Assembly: GCF_006345805.1 (NCBI RefSeq)
Contig: NC_043001.1
Location: 49,476,001 to 49,540,000 of the forward strand
Direction of reading: 5' to 3'
DNA length: 64,000 bases
Source of the DNA: Octopus sinensis
Taxonomy: Eukaryota
Shown here: positions 17,779 through 62,503 of the stretch, one piece after another
Layout of the letters: the number at the start of each line of letters is the position of its first letter
Numbering within the stretch: the stretch's first letter is position 1
The notes under the pieces: generated by a model
Database searches by the model: none
Told to the model about the DNA's origin: nothing
The model's input: the letters and a program-made list of their open reading frames with translations, nothing else
Program-made: the position numbers and the translations under genes

Positions 17779-17943
17779 TTAAAACTCGGTTTTCTCCCGC
17801 CTCTTAATGTATTGATCAATTTTCGGGTGTTCAGCCACTCGCTTCCGCAAAGCTTGCAGTTTGGGATAATCCTTCAGTAAGCTGGATTTATCATGCAATG
17901 GGTTCTCCAGTGCCGAATAACACATCAGGTCACACATAAGGAT
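17779..17943 (-). CDS. S-crystallin/sigma-GST gene B, coding exon 5 (last)
   Basis: Acceptor tttcattag; [54 protein letters not shown], the S-crystallin/GST C-terminal domain; 165 nt, phase 0. Confidence 0.95.
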
Positions 17944-18021
17944 CTAATGAAATGCAAGACAGATTATCTTTAATTTACTCCATAAAATAACTAATATATT
18001 ACAAACAACCATAAATAAGTA

Positions 18022-19276
18022 TTGGATCATTCCATAAATAATGCGGTTTTTTCAAATGCATGAACGAAAAGTTGGAGTGGGACGGGATAAACTACCTGCA
18101 TCAAGTTGCTATAAAAGAAGGTAGTAATATTACATTATACTTATTCATAGTAACAGTTTTGAAGGGTGCAGTTCGATTTTAACAGTTATTTTTTCAAAGC
18201 TATTATGGAAGTGACAAAGTAGCATATTCGGCATATTTTGCTTTATGAGTTCAATAAAGGCAACAACGCAACGGAAAGTGCGAGGAATATTAATGCAGTA
18301 TATGGGGATCGGACAATAAGCGTAAGCCAGTGTCAACGGTGGATCCAGAAAATCCGAGCCAGAAACTACAGCCTAGAAGACGAGCCTCGTCCTGTAAGAT
18401 CTGTAGAGCTCAATGATGACATCCTATAACCGGGGGGGGGGGAATCTCATCGAAACTGTTAAGGAACTAGCAGAGAAGCTTGGATTTGGTCATTCAACCA
18501 TTCATCGACACCTGTGTGCTATCGGAAAAGTCAACAAATTGGGTCAGTAGGTTCCTCACAAACTTTCCGAGTCTAATCGCACGCAGAGAGTGAATGTGTG
18601 CTCTTCCTTGCTGTCACGTCTCACGAATGAACCTTTTTTGGACCAAATAGTGACTGGTGACGAGAAATGGCTTCTCTAAAAAAATGTCAAGCGCCGAAGA
18701 CAGTGGGTAGGGCAAGGAGAAACATCGGCACCCCAGGCTAAAGAAGGTCTGTTTGGTGGGATATGAAAGGTTAAGTGGACTTTTAAACCCAAACCAAACG
18801 ATAACAAAGGAGATCTACTGCGAGCAGCTTGAGTGGCTTAAGTCAGCGCTAGAAAAAAAAAACGATCATCTTTAATTTCAAGACAAAAGTCGTTCTTCCA
18901 TCAAGATAATGCTCGGCAATATACAGCGAGGATGACATTCCAAAGGCTTGAGCAGTTTGAATGGGAAATGATGTCCCATCCACCATATTCACCGGACATT
19001 GCCCCATCTGATTATCATTTATTCTGCAGTCTTCAAAATCATTTGGACGTAAAAAATATGAATTCTGTAGACGAGGTGAGAACAATACTGGAGGAGTGTT
19101 TTTCGTCACGGACAAGTGAATTTTGGAAGAGGGGGCCTTGCAATTCTACAAGATAGGTGGAGTTTTTTGTAGAAAATGAAGGAGAGTATATTTTAGATTA
19201 AAAAAGAACTTTATTTGTCTTGATTTTGAAAAATAAAGAAGTATAAAAATACCACATTATTTATGGGATGACCCAA
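18022..19276 (+). mobile_element. mariner (DD34D-type) transposon, full length, frameshifted
   Basis: TA-flanked TIRs ttggatcattccataaataatgcgg / ccacattatttatgggatgacccaa; relic motifs IVTGDEKW, LHQDNAR, HPPYSPDIAPSDYHLF. Lies in gene B intron 4. Confidence 0.92.
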
Positions 19277-19494
19277 TACATACAAAAATAATTTAATTAG
19301 TTCAAAATCACAGTATACATATTTATATACAATATAAGTCGGTTTGAAAATCATATACACAAGCAATGTTTCTCTCTCATTCTTATTACTTTCTGTACAA
19401 CAGAATATCTATGTGCCCACAGTGAATACACAATAACCATAACTATCAATTATTACAATTATTTTAGGTAACTACAATTATTTTAGATAACATT

Positions 19495-19950
19495 GGTCTC
19501 AAATTTTGGCACAAGGCCAGCAGTTTCGGGGTGGGCGGGAGGGAGCAAGTCGATTACATCGATCCCAGTGCTCAACTGGTACTTATTTTATTGACTCTCG
19601 AAAGGGATGAAAAGCTGGGTTGATCTCGACGGTATTTGAACTCAGAAAGTAAAAGACGTAAAGACAGGTGAAATGCCGCTAAGCATTATGTCCGACGTAC
19701 TAACGATTCCTCCAGTTCTCCGCTTTAATAATAATGATTTCAAATTTTGGCGCGAGGCCAGCAATTTCAGGGGGAAGGGGTAAGTCGATCACAACGACTC
19801 CAGTACTCAACTGGTGCTTAATTTATCGTCCCCGAAAGGATGAAAGGCTAAGTCGACCTCAGCAGAATTTGAACTCAGAACACAAAGACAGACGAAACGC
19901 CGCTAGGCATTTTCCCCGACGTGCTAACAATTCTATCAGTTCGCCGTCTT
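19495..19950 (-). mobile_element. Two tandem SINE-M-related copies
   Basis: aaattttggc(a/g)c(a/g)aggccagca...gtcgattacatcga unit repeated at ~19500 and ~19740. Confidence 0.75.
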
Positions 19951-60083: not shown

Positions 60084-62159
60084 ATTATATTACATTCCAC
60101 AACTAATTTATTATTCTTAGAATTTCAGTTTCTATGAATGGTTTCCTTTAGGAAAATCGTCCACTTCTTTGTTGGCCAGGATTGCTGACTCAGGATCCAT
60201 CTCGCAATCACAGATTTAATAATTCCTTGTATTTGCTATATATGCATACATACATACCTGCATAGACATACACACACACACACACACACACACACACACA
60301 CACACACATAAATATATATGCGCGTGCGTGGTGTGTATGTGTATAAATACATATACAGACATGCATACATACACGCGTGTGCATATATATATATATATAT
60401 ATATATATATAGTGACGTATATCTGCCATTTAAATATGGCTAACCCCTAGGGTTGGATGCTACTGTAGTTTGTAGCCCCAGGAGGACACCTCCTCCAGCT
60501 GGCTATAGACACACTTTCTGTGCCCTATCAGTATTTGCAAAAGGAAGCCATCCTTCCCGTCTCCAACTTATGATACACACGGACTCGAGTTTCTGGGTAT
60601 TGACCCGTCATCGGCCTGTGACAATCACAGTTATTGATGAAAAGTAGGTTCCCTTCACAATTACACGAAGTAAAAATATATCGTTCAGATACACACACAC
60701 ACATATATATTATATAAAAAATACAAAATGGGACTAGAACTCAAAACATCCTGACAGTCAGGTGATACAAAAAAGGGACAACAAAACATCTAGATAGACG
60801 ACACAAAGAAAACAAGGACGAGTCATTCGGAGTTTTCTTTCTTCAGTCGAGTTCCAGATTATCTTTGCAATTTCGGCTTGTTATACTCGAGATGGCTCCA
60901 ATATGGCCAGTCTCAAGGAAAAAACTAAGCTAAGAGCATTAGATTCCTTGGAAGAAAGCAGCGAATGTATACGAAAATAAGACACCTGTTGTAATGTCCT
61001 TTTATTTGTATTTGTGTAACATTCTCCGTTTTTTTTCCGTGCTTGTTTTGTATTTTTTATATATAAAACGTATAGCGGCGTACGTACACTTTGCTCTCTC
61101 TCTCTCTCTCTCTCTCACTAATATATATATATATATATATATATACATATATAGCCACCCTGCTACTTTGTTTGTTGCAAGATCTGTGACTGATTGTCGC
61201 TTGATTTTCTATATATTGTGAACTGTAAAAATGATCTGTAACCGTTCGGTCTGGTGATCCCATCGTCTGCTAGAAGAGGGTAGAGGTTTACTCCCCTACT
61301 TGCGATATATACCGGGTGCAGATTGCATCGATAACCAGTTGCAGGAGTCTTTTCTTAGGGTTAAAAACGGTAGTAACGTCGAATAGCCATACTGATGTAA
61401 CGATAAACATTACTTCTTAGTATAGTTACTACTTTCGTCTCTTATAAAGATTTTCTAACTAGCAACCTTGCTTTATATATATATATATATATATATATAT
61501 ATATATATATATATATATATATATATATATATATATATATATATATATATAATATATGTATGTATGTATATATAATGTATGTATGTATACATAATGTATG
61601 TATGTATGAATGTATGTATGTATGTATGAATGAGTGAATGTATGTATGTATGTATGTATGTATGTATATATGAACGTATGTATGTATGTATGTATGCATG
61701 TATGTATATATGTATGCATATATGTATGTATGTATGTACGTATGTATGTATGTATGTATGTATGTATGTATGTATGTATGTATGTGTGTGTGTATGTATG
61801 TATGTATATATGTATGTATGTATGTATGTATGTATGTATGTATGTATGTATGTATGTATGTATGTATGTATGTATGTATGTATGTGTGTGTATGTATGTA
61901 TGTATGTATGTATGTATGTGTGTGTATGTATGTATGTACGTATGTATATATGTATACGACTTGCTCAGGATAGAGCGCACCAGAATTAAAACCAAGACCT
62001 TATGATTACAAAGCAAACTGCTTAATCAGTCGGCCATACTGCTGCTTGTGCTGCTGCGACCATTACAACAACAACAACAACTACTACTACTACTACTACT
62101 ACAGTGGATAATGTAATGCTAAATATTATTTCGACACTAACAACAGCATTGATTGCAGT

Positions 62160-62320
62160 GCACAAGAAAGAAAGAAAGAAAGAAAAAAAAGAAAGAATGA
62201 AAGAAAGAAAGAAAGAAAGAAAGAAAAAAAAGAAAGAATGAAAGAAAGAAAGAAAGAAAGAAAGAAAGAAAGAAAGAAAGAAAGAAAGAAAGAAAGAACG
62301 AAAGAAAGAAAGTGAGAAAA
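62160..62320. repeat. (AAAG)n microsatellite in gene A intron 1
   Basis: Directly visible. Confidence 0.95.
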
Positions 62321-62370
62321 AAGAGGGATGGTTGAAGGCGAAAGCGTAAAGATAGGTAAATAACACTGAC

Positions 62371-62503
62371 TGTTTTTGAAACGGTTCCATTCTGAGATTT
62401 TAATCCTTCGGTCGGTATAATGGACACCGGCGGCTGCAAACAGAATTCGACAAATTTCTGCACGACCACGACCATTAAAATAGAACAAATTATAAGTCGG
62501 CAT
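62371..62503 (-). CDS. S-crystallin/sigma-GST gene A, coding exon 1
   Basis: ATG at 62503; [44 protein letters not shown], then A|gtcagt; 133 nt, the same length and phase as gene B. Confidence 0.95.

Follow-up and report, generated by a model that had tools for sequence, protein, structure and literature searches.

Two adjacent short-loop S-crystallin-clade genes of Octopus, probably old lineages with different residues at the transferase-to-crystallin switch positions

Introduction

The recruitment of an enzyme as a lens protein is classically illustrated by the S-crystallins. In this work, we analyzed a 64,000-nucleotide stretch of Octopus sinensis chromosome CM016863.1 (GCA_006345805.1) at ~49.5 Mb, hereafter the window, which carries two members of the sigma-class glutathione S-transferase (GST)/S-crystallin family, gene A and gene B, arranged head-to-tail on the minus strand and 10 kb apart. 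An original prediction, made from the letters of the window, had proposed that these genes might capture adjacent steps of the GST-to-crystallin transition. We favor another explanation, to which as a whole we assign a probability of about 0.7: the locus is a conserved two-gene sub-cluster of short-loop, S-crystallin-clade, sigma-class GSTs in Octopus, with gene A as a separate and old short-loop lineage that is not sister to the main octopus crystallins carrying Leu100/Asp101 (L/D). Gene B is most likely the octopus counterpart of the squid SL11/Cry9 class, as judged by its sequence.

The reference for this transition is the work of Tan et al. 2016 (PMC4976375), in which L100, D101, M104 and Q108 of octopus OctS4 were described as the four key residues with respect to F98/N99/V102/F106 of GST-sigma, and in which the squid short-loop proteins SL11, LopS4 and Cry9 were reported to retain Phe100/Asn101. 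On the basis of engineered mutants of a single octopus protein and of squid sequences only, these authors proposed that positions 104 and 108 changed first, followed by 100 and 101, with the insertion of the loop as the last event; octopus short-loop genes fell outside their analysis. Octopus GST-sigma conjugates 1-chloro-2,4-dinitrobenzene with a turnover number (kcat) of ~174 s-1, while wild-type OctS4 showed a kcat of 0.24 s-1, a Km for glutathione (GSH) of 0.03 mM and a melting temperature 7 °C higher with GSH (PMC4976375). In the same study, kcat was 0.41 s-1 for D101N, 3.7 s-1 for L100F and 10.6 s-1 for Q108F. The loop-deleted protein (delta-loop) had a kcat of 0.38 s-1, a Km for GSH of 2.2 mM and no GSH protection, and kcat values of 0.40, 5.2 and 0.80 s-1 were reported for delta-loop/D101N, delta-loop/Q108F and delta-loop/L100F/D101N, respectively. 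Beyond Tan et al. 2016, no paper was found in literature searches for the RefSeq and UniProt accessions of this locus or for "short-loop S-crystallin".

Both genes resemble squid SL11 (Nototodarus sloanii, P18426), LopS4 and Cry9 (Idiosepius paradoxus) in their length of 205 aa and the lack of a central insert. Gene B shares with these proteins (~63% identity) Lys43, Asn101, Met104 and the ..AKK type of exon junction, but differs in Cys100 and His108, since the squid proteins are F/N/M/N at positions 100/101/104/108; gene A is ~56% identical to them and has Leu100/Asp101/Leu104/Tyr108. OctS4 (structure 5B7C) and its O. sinensis orthologue at locus L003 have the same fold, belong to the same clade, are ~57% identical to each of the two genes and have equal exon lengths except for the loop exon. 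OctS4 and gene A have Leu100/Asp101 in common, with the same codons TTG GAC (those of OctS4 being taken from primer sequences). Unlike both genes, OctS4 possesses a sixth exon of 30 nt for most of the 112–122 loop, Arg43, Gln108, a Met content of 13.5% and an Arg fraction, R/(K+R), of ~0.8. Among the engineered OctS4 variants, delta-loop and delta-loop/Q108F come closest to gene A (L/D, no loop, aromatic residue at 108) and delta-loop/D101N, the "short-loop mimic", to gene B; however, ~43% of positions differ between the natural and engineered proteins, and Cys100, Leu104, His108 and Tyr108 are not among the mutants. Finally, the digestive-gland GST-sigma proteins (squid 1GSQ/2GSQ and Idiosepius GST2) share with both genes the sigma-class fold, the catalytic Tyr and Arg14/Trp39/Lys43/Gln64/Ser65, and they have an Asn equivalent to residue 101, as in gene B, and an aromatic residue equivalent to 108, as in gene A, but their identity is 41–47%, their residues are F/N/V/F and they lie outside the S-crystallin clade.

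Results

Gene structure and conservation of the locus

Gene models were built by tblastn and manual modeling of splice borders. Gene B (39416 to 17779) is complete, with five GT-AG exons of 133/96/116/108/165 nt encoding 205 aa. In agreement with the original prediction, it lacks the central insert and contains 11 Met. Its protein is 100% identical to XP_029636658.1, annotated as O. sinensis "S-crystallin SL11-like" and recorded at 49.49–49.52 Mb only. The features of gene B are as follows:

39284..39416, minus strand: exon 1, 133 nt; ATG at 39416-39414
24092..24187, minus strand: exon 2, 96 nt; AG/GT borders
22969..23084, minus strand: exon 3, 116 nt; ends in ...EKDPAKK; codons 100-108 at 23016-22990, with Cys100 (TGT), Asn101 (AAT), Met104 and His108
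21510..21617, minus strand: exon 4, 108 nt; directly follows exon 3, with no 30-nt loop exon between them
17779..17943, minus strand: exon 5, 165 nt including the stop codon TAA at 17781-17779
39507..39512, minus strand: candidate TATA box (TATAAA) from a pattern scan, 96 nt 5' of the start codon; putative function

Gene A (62503 to 49545) is readable in exons 1–3 (133/96/116 nt) and in the last 59 nt of exon 5:

62371..62503, minus strand: exon 1, 133 nt; ATG at 62503-62501, codons 1-44 plus 1 nt, GT donor; Tyr8, Arg14, Trp39 and Lys43; protein 100% identical to O. vulgaris exon 1
58563..58658, minus strand: exon 2, 96 nt, phase 1; Gln64 and Ser65; AG/GT borders; R74K with respect to O. vulgaris
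52141..52256, minus strand: exon 3, 116 nt; ends in ...EKNFSKK; codons 100-108 at 52188-52162, with Leu100 (TTG), Asp101 (GAC), Leu104 and Tyr108 (numbering checked against 5B7C and 1GSQ)
49604..49703, no strand: assembly gap of 100 N inside gene A; ~10.1 kb missing
49545..49603, minus strand: last 59 nt of exon 5, ..VCHPQISAYLLKRSDTSF, with the stop codon TAA at 49547-49545; abuts the gap; identical to O. vulgaris

The gap is the single run of N in the window, which has a G+C content of 36.8% and many microsatellites. It was delimited with the O. vulgaris locus (OX597818.1:17179424-17255372, hereafter L001), which is gap-free and colinear with the window at 97–98% identity. The upstream edge lies in intron 3 of gene A (window 50400-49704 aligns with L001 22109-22747, position 49704 corresponding to L001 22747) and the downstream edge in the middle of exon 5 (window 49603 aligns with L001 32878); the two sides are not continuous and cannot be read across, and only 18 codons plus the stop are readable after the gap. 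In O. vulgaris, exons 4 and 5 of gene A are located at L001 26930-27037 and 32772-32936; accordingly, the missing DNA comprises the 108-nt exon 4 and intron 4, together with the remainder of intron 3 on one side and the initial 106 nt of exon 5 on the other. Searches with squid GST, gene B and the O. bimaculoides orthologue revealed no trace of gene A exon 4 in the window, because it lies inside the gap.

Both genes are intact in O. vulgaris and in O. bimaculoides (L005/L006), with 133/96/116/108/165 nt and 205 aa each; these loci are gap-free and share the tandem order of the window, and in O. bimaculoides both genes are on the same strand and 9.95 kb apart. Based on these orthologues rather than on the window, gene A is predicted to encode a 205-aa protein without the loop. 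The public gene models at the locus are wrong in two of the three species. Because of the assembly gap, the O. sinensis model XP_036359020.1 (P0068, window 62503-47657) combines exons 1–3 of gene A with intron read-through and unrelated downstream pieces, and the O. vulgaris 241-aa model (P0002, L001 10001-65949) is a read-through fusion of exons 1–4 of gene A with exons 4–5 of gene B.

The equal lengths and phases of exons 1–3 that had been predicted for the two genes were recovered with GT-AG borders. However, the 133/96/116 pattern is also present in the one long-loop S-crystallin gene examined and is therefore not special to this pair. That gene, the O. sinensis OctS4 orthologue (L003, CM016863.1 at ~85.65 Mb), has six exons of 133/96/116/30/108/165 nt, the 30-nt loop exon (L003 18110-18139) encoding FQRSRDMSSS in the loop that connects helices alpha4 and alpha5. 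Genes A and B differ from it by the lack of this exon (for gene A, via its orthologues). Their exon 3/4 junctions (..NFSKK/AALRD in A and ..DPAKK/EELRR in B) are similar to that of SL11 (..DAAKK/TELQK) and unlike the long-loop type (..GRMM/). When intron 3 of gene B and of O. vulgaris gene A was searched for a decayed loop exon, using as queries loop peptides and the 30-nt exon together with its flanks, only microsatellite matches were obtained.

Two further 205-aa proteins, P0014 (O. vulgaris) and P0025 (O. bimaculoides), are clearly of the long-loop type (Met 12–13%, L or M/D/M/Q) and lack only the 10 loop-exon residues; they correspond either to genuine genes without the 30-nt exon or to exon skipping in the annotation. 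At L003 (10001-20960 and 39823-52100), the annotated protein P0028 appears to join exons of two adjacent tandem genes, the second of which resembles P0014 and P0025.

Domains and switch residues

Pfam GST_N, GST_C_3 and GST_C were detected above cutoff in gene B and in the gene A orthologue, and structural matches included 5B7C (gene B, E=7.5e-76), 1GSQ (E=2e-52) and HPGDS. The GSH-site residues Tyr8, Arg14, Trp39, Lys43, Gln64 and Ser65 are kept in both genes, in the window as well as in the orthologues; Tyr8 and Trp39 were among the residues already pointed out in the original prediction. The alignment to 5B7C, the OctvuS4 structure, is ungapped over residues 1–109, and positions 100/101/104/108 map onto F98/N99/V102/F106 of squid GST-sigma (1GSQ), so that they are equivalent to the described switch residues.

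At these four positions, codons confirmed L/D/L/Y for gene A, which is the state in all three species, and C/N/M/H for gene B, which is the state in O. sinensis and O. bimaculoides. The assignment of Asn101 (gene B) to the GST state and of Leu100/Asp101 (gene A) to the octopus crystallin state, given in the original prediction, matches Tan et al. 2016 (PMC4976375). Neither gene has the full GST-sigma pocket, since gene A keeps Tyr for Phe and gene B keeps Asn, at most one residue each. Likewise, Phe100 plus Asn101 of the short-loop class is not retained by either gene, gene B being Cys100/Asn101 and gene A Leu100/Asp101. The states found in the other groups were:

Squid GST-sigma: F/N/V/F
Squid short-loop proteins: F/N/M/N
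Main octopus long-loop crystallins: L or M / D / M or L / H or Q
Squid long-loop proteins: M or L / H / M / H
Long-loop lineages P0008, P0045, P0056 and SL18: F/N kept at 100/101

Across lineages, three residues (N, D and H) occur at position 101 and seven (F, L, M, C, V, I and Q) at position 100. Lys43 is found in genes A and B, GST-sigma and SL11, while Arg43 predominates among long-loop proteins. A further 205-aa short-loop S-crystallin-like protein with V/N/I/Y was identified in Logan transcript assemblies (P0006, 74 contigs), 60% identical to gene B and 53% to gene A.

Phylogenetic relationships

Neighbor-joining (NJ) trees were inferred from 205 trimmed columns with two distance measures, Kimura and Scoredist (400 and 300 bootstraps). 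Squid and Idiosepius GST-sigma were employed as outgroups, because, at the threshold applied, searching with the squid GST recovered no sequences other than squid-type ones. An S-crystallin clade that includes gene A, gene B and SL11 and excludes GST-sigma was recovered in 99.8% (Kimura) and 100% (Scoredist) of the bootstraps. Within it, gene B grouped with SL11 in 41–55%, and a group of gene A with all other S-crystallins, excluding gene B and SL11, appeared in 33–43%. The core octopus L/D clade itself reached 90–97%, but gene A joined it in only 0–0.2%. All long-loop genes formed a single clade in ~7%.

Genes A and B did not group in any of the 400 or 300 bootstraps. Their proteins are ~56% identical (61% over residues 1–115), their synonymous sites are saturated and their non-synonymous divergence (dN) is 0.36, which led us to reject a recent tandem duplication. 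The original prediction of tandem short paralogues holds with regard to the tandem arrangement and the short form (seen in the window for gene B and in orthologues for gene A), while the sister relationship does not survive a phylogeny that includes GST-sigma, SL11 and long S-crystallins. As far as their sequences tell, A and B are old lineages that happen to adjoin rather than a recent duplicate pair. Exon by exon, gene B is closest to SL11/Cry9 throughout (64% overall), and gene A is equidistant (54–57%) from all S-crystallin groups. We also considered and rejected the possibility that a long-loop gene had converted exon 3 of gene A, as there was no outlier among the per-exon identities.

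Between O. bimaculoides and O. vulgaris, the ratio of non-synonymous to synonymous divergence (dN/dS) was 0.08 for gene A (dS 0.166) and 0.42 for gene B (dS 0.079; small counts of 9 synonymous and 16 non-synonymous changes). The ratio is below 1 in both genes, clearly so only for gene A.

Composition

Met content, R/(K+R) and the estimated refractive index increment (dn/dc) were compared between groups:

Gene A: Met 3.4%; R/(K+R) 0.55; estimated dn/dc ~0.196
Gene B: Met 5.1–5.4%; R/(K+R) 0.48; estimated dn/dc ~0.196
GST-sigma: Met 3.7%; R/(K+R) 0.36; estimated dn/dc 0.1915
SL11 class: Met ~5.4–5.9% (5.5% in the tabulated comparison); R/(K+R) 0.42; estimated dn/dc ~0.195
Main octopus crystallins: Met 10.4%; R/(K+R) 0.78; estimated dn/dc 0.197 (0.197–0.200 for major crystallins)

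The lens trends of Arg for Lys and high Met are consistent with a previous study (PMC4047532). The estimated dn/dc of both genes lies between GST-sigma and the major crystallins, and their Met and R/(K+R) values are well below those of the major octopus crystallins. By composition, neither gene appears to resemble an abundant lens crystallin, and both would be closer to the low-abundance SL11 class.

Functional implications of the OctS4 mutants

The original prediction had linked Leu100/Asp101 to the loss of activity and to tighter GSH binding. This link appears overstated in view of the OctS4 data, in which D101N left kcat nearly unchanged and tight binding required the loop. By analogy with those mutants, Asn or Asp at residue 101 should barely affect turnover in a loopless protein, tight GSH binding would need the loop and be lost whatever residue 101 is, and an aromatic residue at 108 would have the largest effect on activity. 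Since Tyr108 is aromatic, gene A may be the more active of the two, the reverse of the order originally assumed, although sequence alone cannot tell which of them is. Each gene is a mosaic: gene A is L/D but has an aromatic residue at 108 and 3.4% Met, and gene B has Asn101 but Cys100 and His108.

By the same analogy, both products would be dimeric GSH-binding proteins with low to moderate transferase activity, a millimolar Km for GSH and no GSH-dependent stabilization, in which respect they would resemble OctS4 mutants without the loop. For gene A, pairing of Asp101 with Arg14 would be expected to weaken catalysis, and Tyr108 might partly restore the hydrophobic pocket. The two genes would record mosaic, parallel GST-to-crystallin states instead of two consecutive steps.

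Discussion

Several points weigh against the explanation we favor. The tree is distance-based and has a weak backbone, with the orthology of gene B and SL11 resting on the bootstrap values given above. Gene A is incomplete in the O. sinensis assembly, with exon 4 and most of exon 5 unseen, and the dN/dS of gene B depends on few changes. The dn/dc values are estimates that use per-residue increments attributed to Zhao, Brown and Schuck (2011). The proposed mechanism is wholly an extrapolation from mutants of a paralogue with 57% identity, and Tyr108, Leu104, Cys100 and His108 are outside the set of OctS4 mutants assayed (PMC4976375).

The alternative that survives best, with somewhat less than an even chance, is compatible with the favored explanation: neither product would be a lens protein, and both would be ordinary sigma-class GSTs that function outside the lens and were named by homology. 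Their composition, far from that of abundant crystallins, is in line with this, as are the distance of ~35 Mb that separates the pair from the two long-loop loci sampled on this chromosome and the expression of cuttlefish family members in brain and skin (PMC13218726). Further, the 90%-identity clusters of A and B consist of genome-derived RefSeq models only, with no transcript-assembly members, unlike those of several other family members. Against it, both genes fall inside the S-crystallin clade and not with digestive-gland GST-sigma, their hydrophobic-site residues are not in the GST-sigma state, and squid short-loop SL11/LopS4 are low-abundance lens proteins according to Tan et al. (PMC4976375).

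A second reading, which we regard as plausible but somewhat less probable, concerns convergence, that is, an origin of Leu100/Asp101 in gene A independent of the same pair in the abundant octopus crystallins, in which case the resemblance says nothing about the order of historical events. The variability of positions 100 and 101 across closely related genes fits with this, given that one nucleotide substitution suffices for each departure from the F/N state, and so does the placement of gene A, for which a sister relationship to the L/D clade receives virtually no bootstrap support. The identity of its exon 3 to that clade (53.5%) is only marginally above that to gene B (50%) or SL11 (46%). 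On the other hand, Asp101 is widespread in octopods, including the early-branching P0032, P0038, P0043 and P0054, so that a single early origin with Asn retained in few lines is possible, and the weakness of the backbone limits the argument. Because gene A does not group with the core L/D clade and position 101 varies between lineages, a shared origin of its L/D state is no more than a hypothesis.

The idea of adjacent steps, with gene B in the earlier, enzyme-like state (Asn101) and gene A in the next one, having Leu100/Asp101 before any loop, seems doubtful to us. It was right about the relevant residues, about the different states and about both genes being short; it failed in that the genes are not sisters, each is a mosaic and the expected effect of residue 101 is small. 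The scheme of Tan et al. implies a natural short-loop protein with mutated 100/101 without listing one, and gene A is such a protein, with a junction, Lys43 and low Met that look primitively short, codons for L100/D101 identical to those of OctS4, and the 33–43% bootstrap grouping with all S-crystallins other than gene B and SL11. Nevertheless, gene A is hardly ever sister to the core L/D clade and has Tyr108, while the scheme has position 108 losing its aromatic character early in all S-crystallins. In addition, long-loop F/N lineages (P0008, P0045, P0056 and SL18) and H101 lineages are interspersed among the others, which implies multiple origins, or a reversal, of either the loop or the L/D state.

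It is improbable, in our estimate, that gene A is a surviving natural loopless S-crystallin that had already acquired Leu100/Asp101 before the loop. As the L/D-before-loop form that the published scheme requires and never exemplifies, it would be a tentative candidate, with the odds against it. Were it so, active-site changes would have preceded the insertion of the loop exon in the octopod lineage, and A and B would be natural start and end points, located in one genomic neighborhood, for reconstructing how a GST lost catalysis before gaining GSH-dependent stabilization.

Secondary loss, by which gene A would derive from a long-loop L/D gene that lost the 30-nt exon or have had its exon 3 converted by such a gene, is very unlikely: a separate 30-nt exon is easy to lose, loop-exon-less long-loop-type forms exist (P0014 and P0025) and the long-loop genes rarely form one clade, but those forms show Met 12–13%, R/(K+R) 0.8–0.9, Arg43 and a '...GNYRMM/SEQRM' junction, none of which is found in gene A (Met 3.4%, R/(K+R) 0.55, Lys43 and '...NFSKK/AALRD', as in SL11 and gene B), and neither a loop-exon remnant in intron 3 of O. 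vulgaris gene A nor a converted exon was detected.

Returning to the favored explanation of two old, adjoining short-loop lineages, the locus provides two ready test proteins, loopless with L100/D101 (gene A) and loopless with N101 (gene B), which are intact in both other Octopus species examined. They could reveal what effect, if any, a change at 100/101 has in a protein lacking the loop, and whether activity is rescued by an aromatic side chain at 108. As the locus has been annotated before and neither the family nor the residues are new, the practical value is modest.

Flanking sequences, divergence and mobile elements

The sequence around the TATAAA of gene B is conserved in O. vulgaris. 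No TATA box was found within ~390 nt of the gene A start, and O. bimaculoides gene A has an isoform with an alternative first exon (P0062); for these reasons, gene A may extend further in the 5' direction. A motif scan detected no AP-1/antioxidant response element consensus within 600 nt of either start codon. The 5' flank of gene A (window 62559-62803, minus strand) is an A/C-rich low-complexity tract with ACAACAACC-type repeats, conserved in O. vulgaris, which gives rise to a Thr-rich open reading frame (ORF; 62559-62759, minus strand).

The coding sequence of gene B, located at window 17779-39416 and L001 42930-65949, showed 0 differences in 618 nt between O. sinensis and O. vulgaris, synonymous sites included, against 2–3% in flanking DNA. 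In the readable coding sequence of gene A, there were 4 differences in 404 nt (three synonymous plus R74K), against the same background of 2–3%. With respect to O. bimaculoides, the dS of gene B (0.079) is also below that of gene A (0.166).

Remnants of Mos1/mariner-type transposases were observed in introns of both genes: an HTH_48 domain (E=6e-16) in intron 4 of gene B (18238-18429, plus strand) and a partial DDE Transposase_1 domain (E=1.6e-6) in intron 1 of gene A (58947-59456, minus strand). Mariner-like ORF pieces with no Pfam match are also present at 18932-19156, 33944-34207, 50656-50922 and 59568-59876. Finally, intron 1 of gene B contains an inverted repeat with arms of 106 nt (36291-36396 and 36492-36597, 93% complementary, spacer of 95 nt), as a result of which one and the same ~150-aa peptide can be read from either strand (ORFs 36108-36578, minus, and 36151-36648, plus). 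The repeat, probably a foldback element, occurs in O. vulgaris as well.

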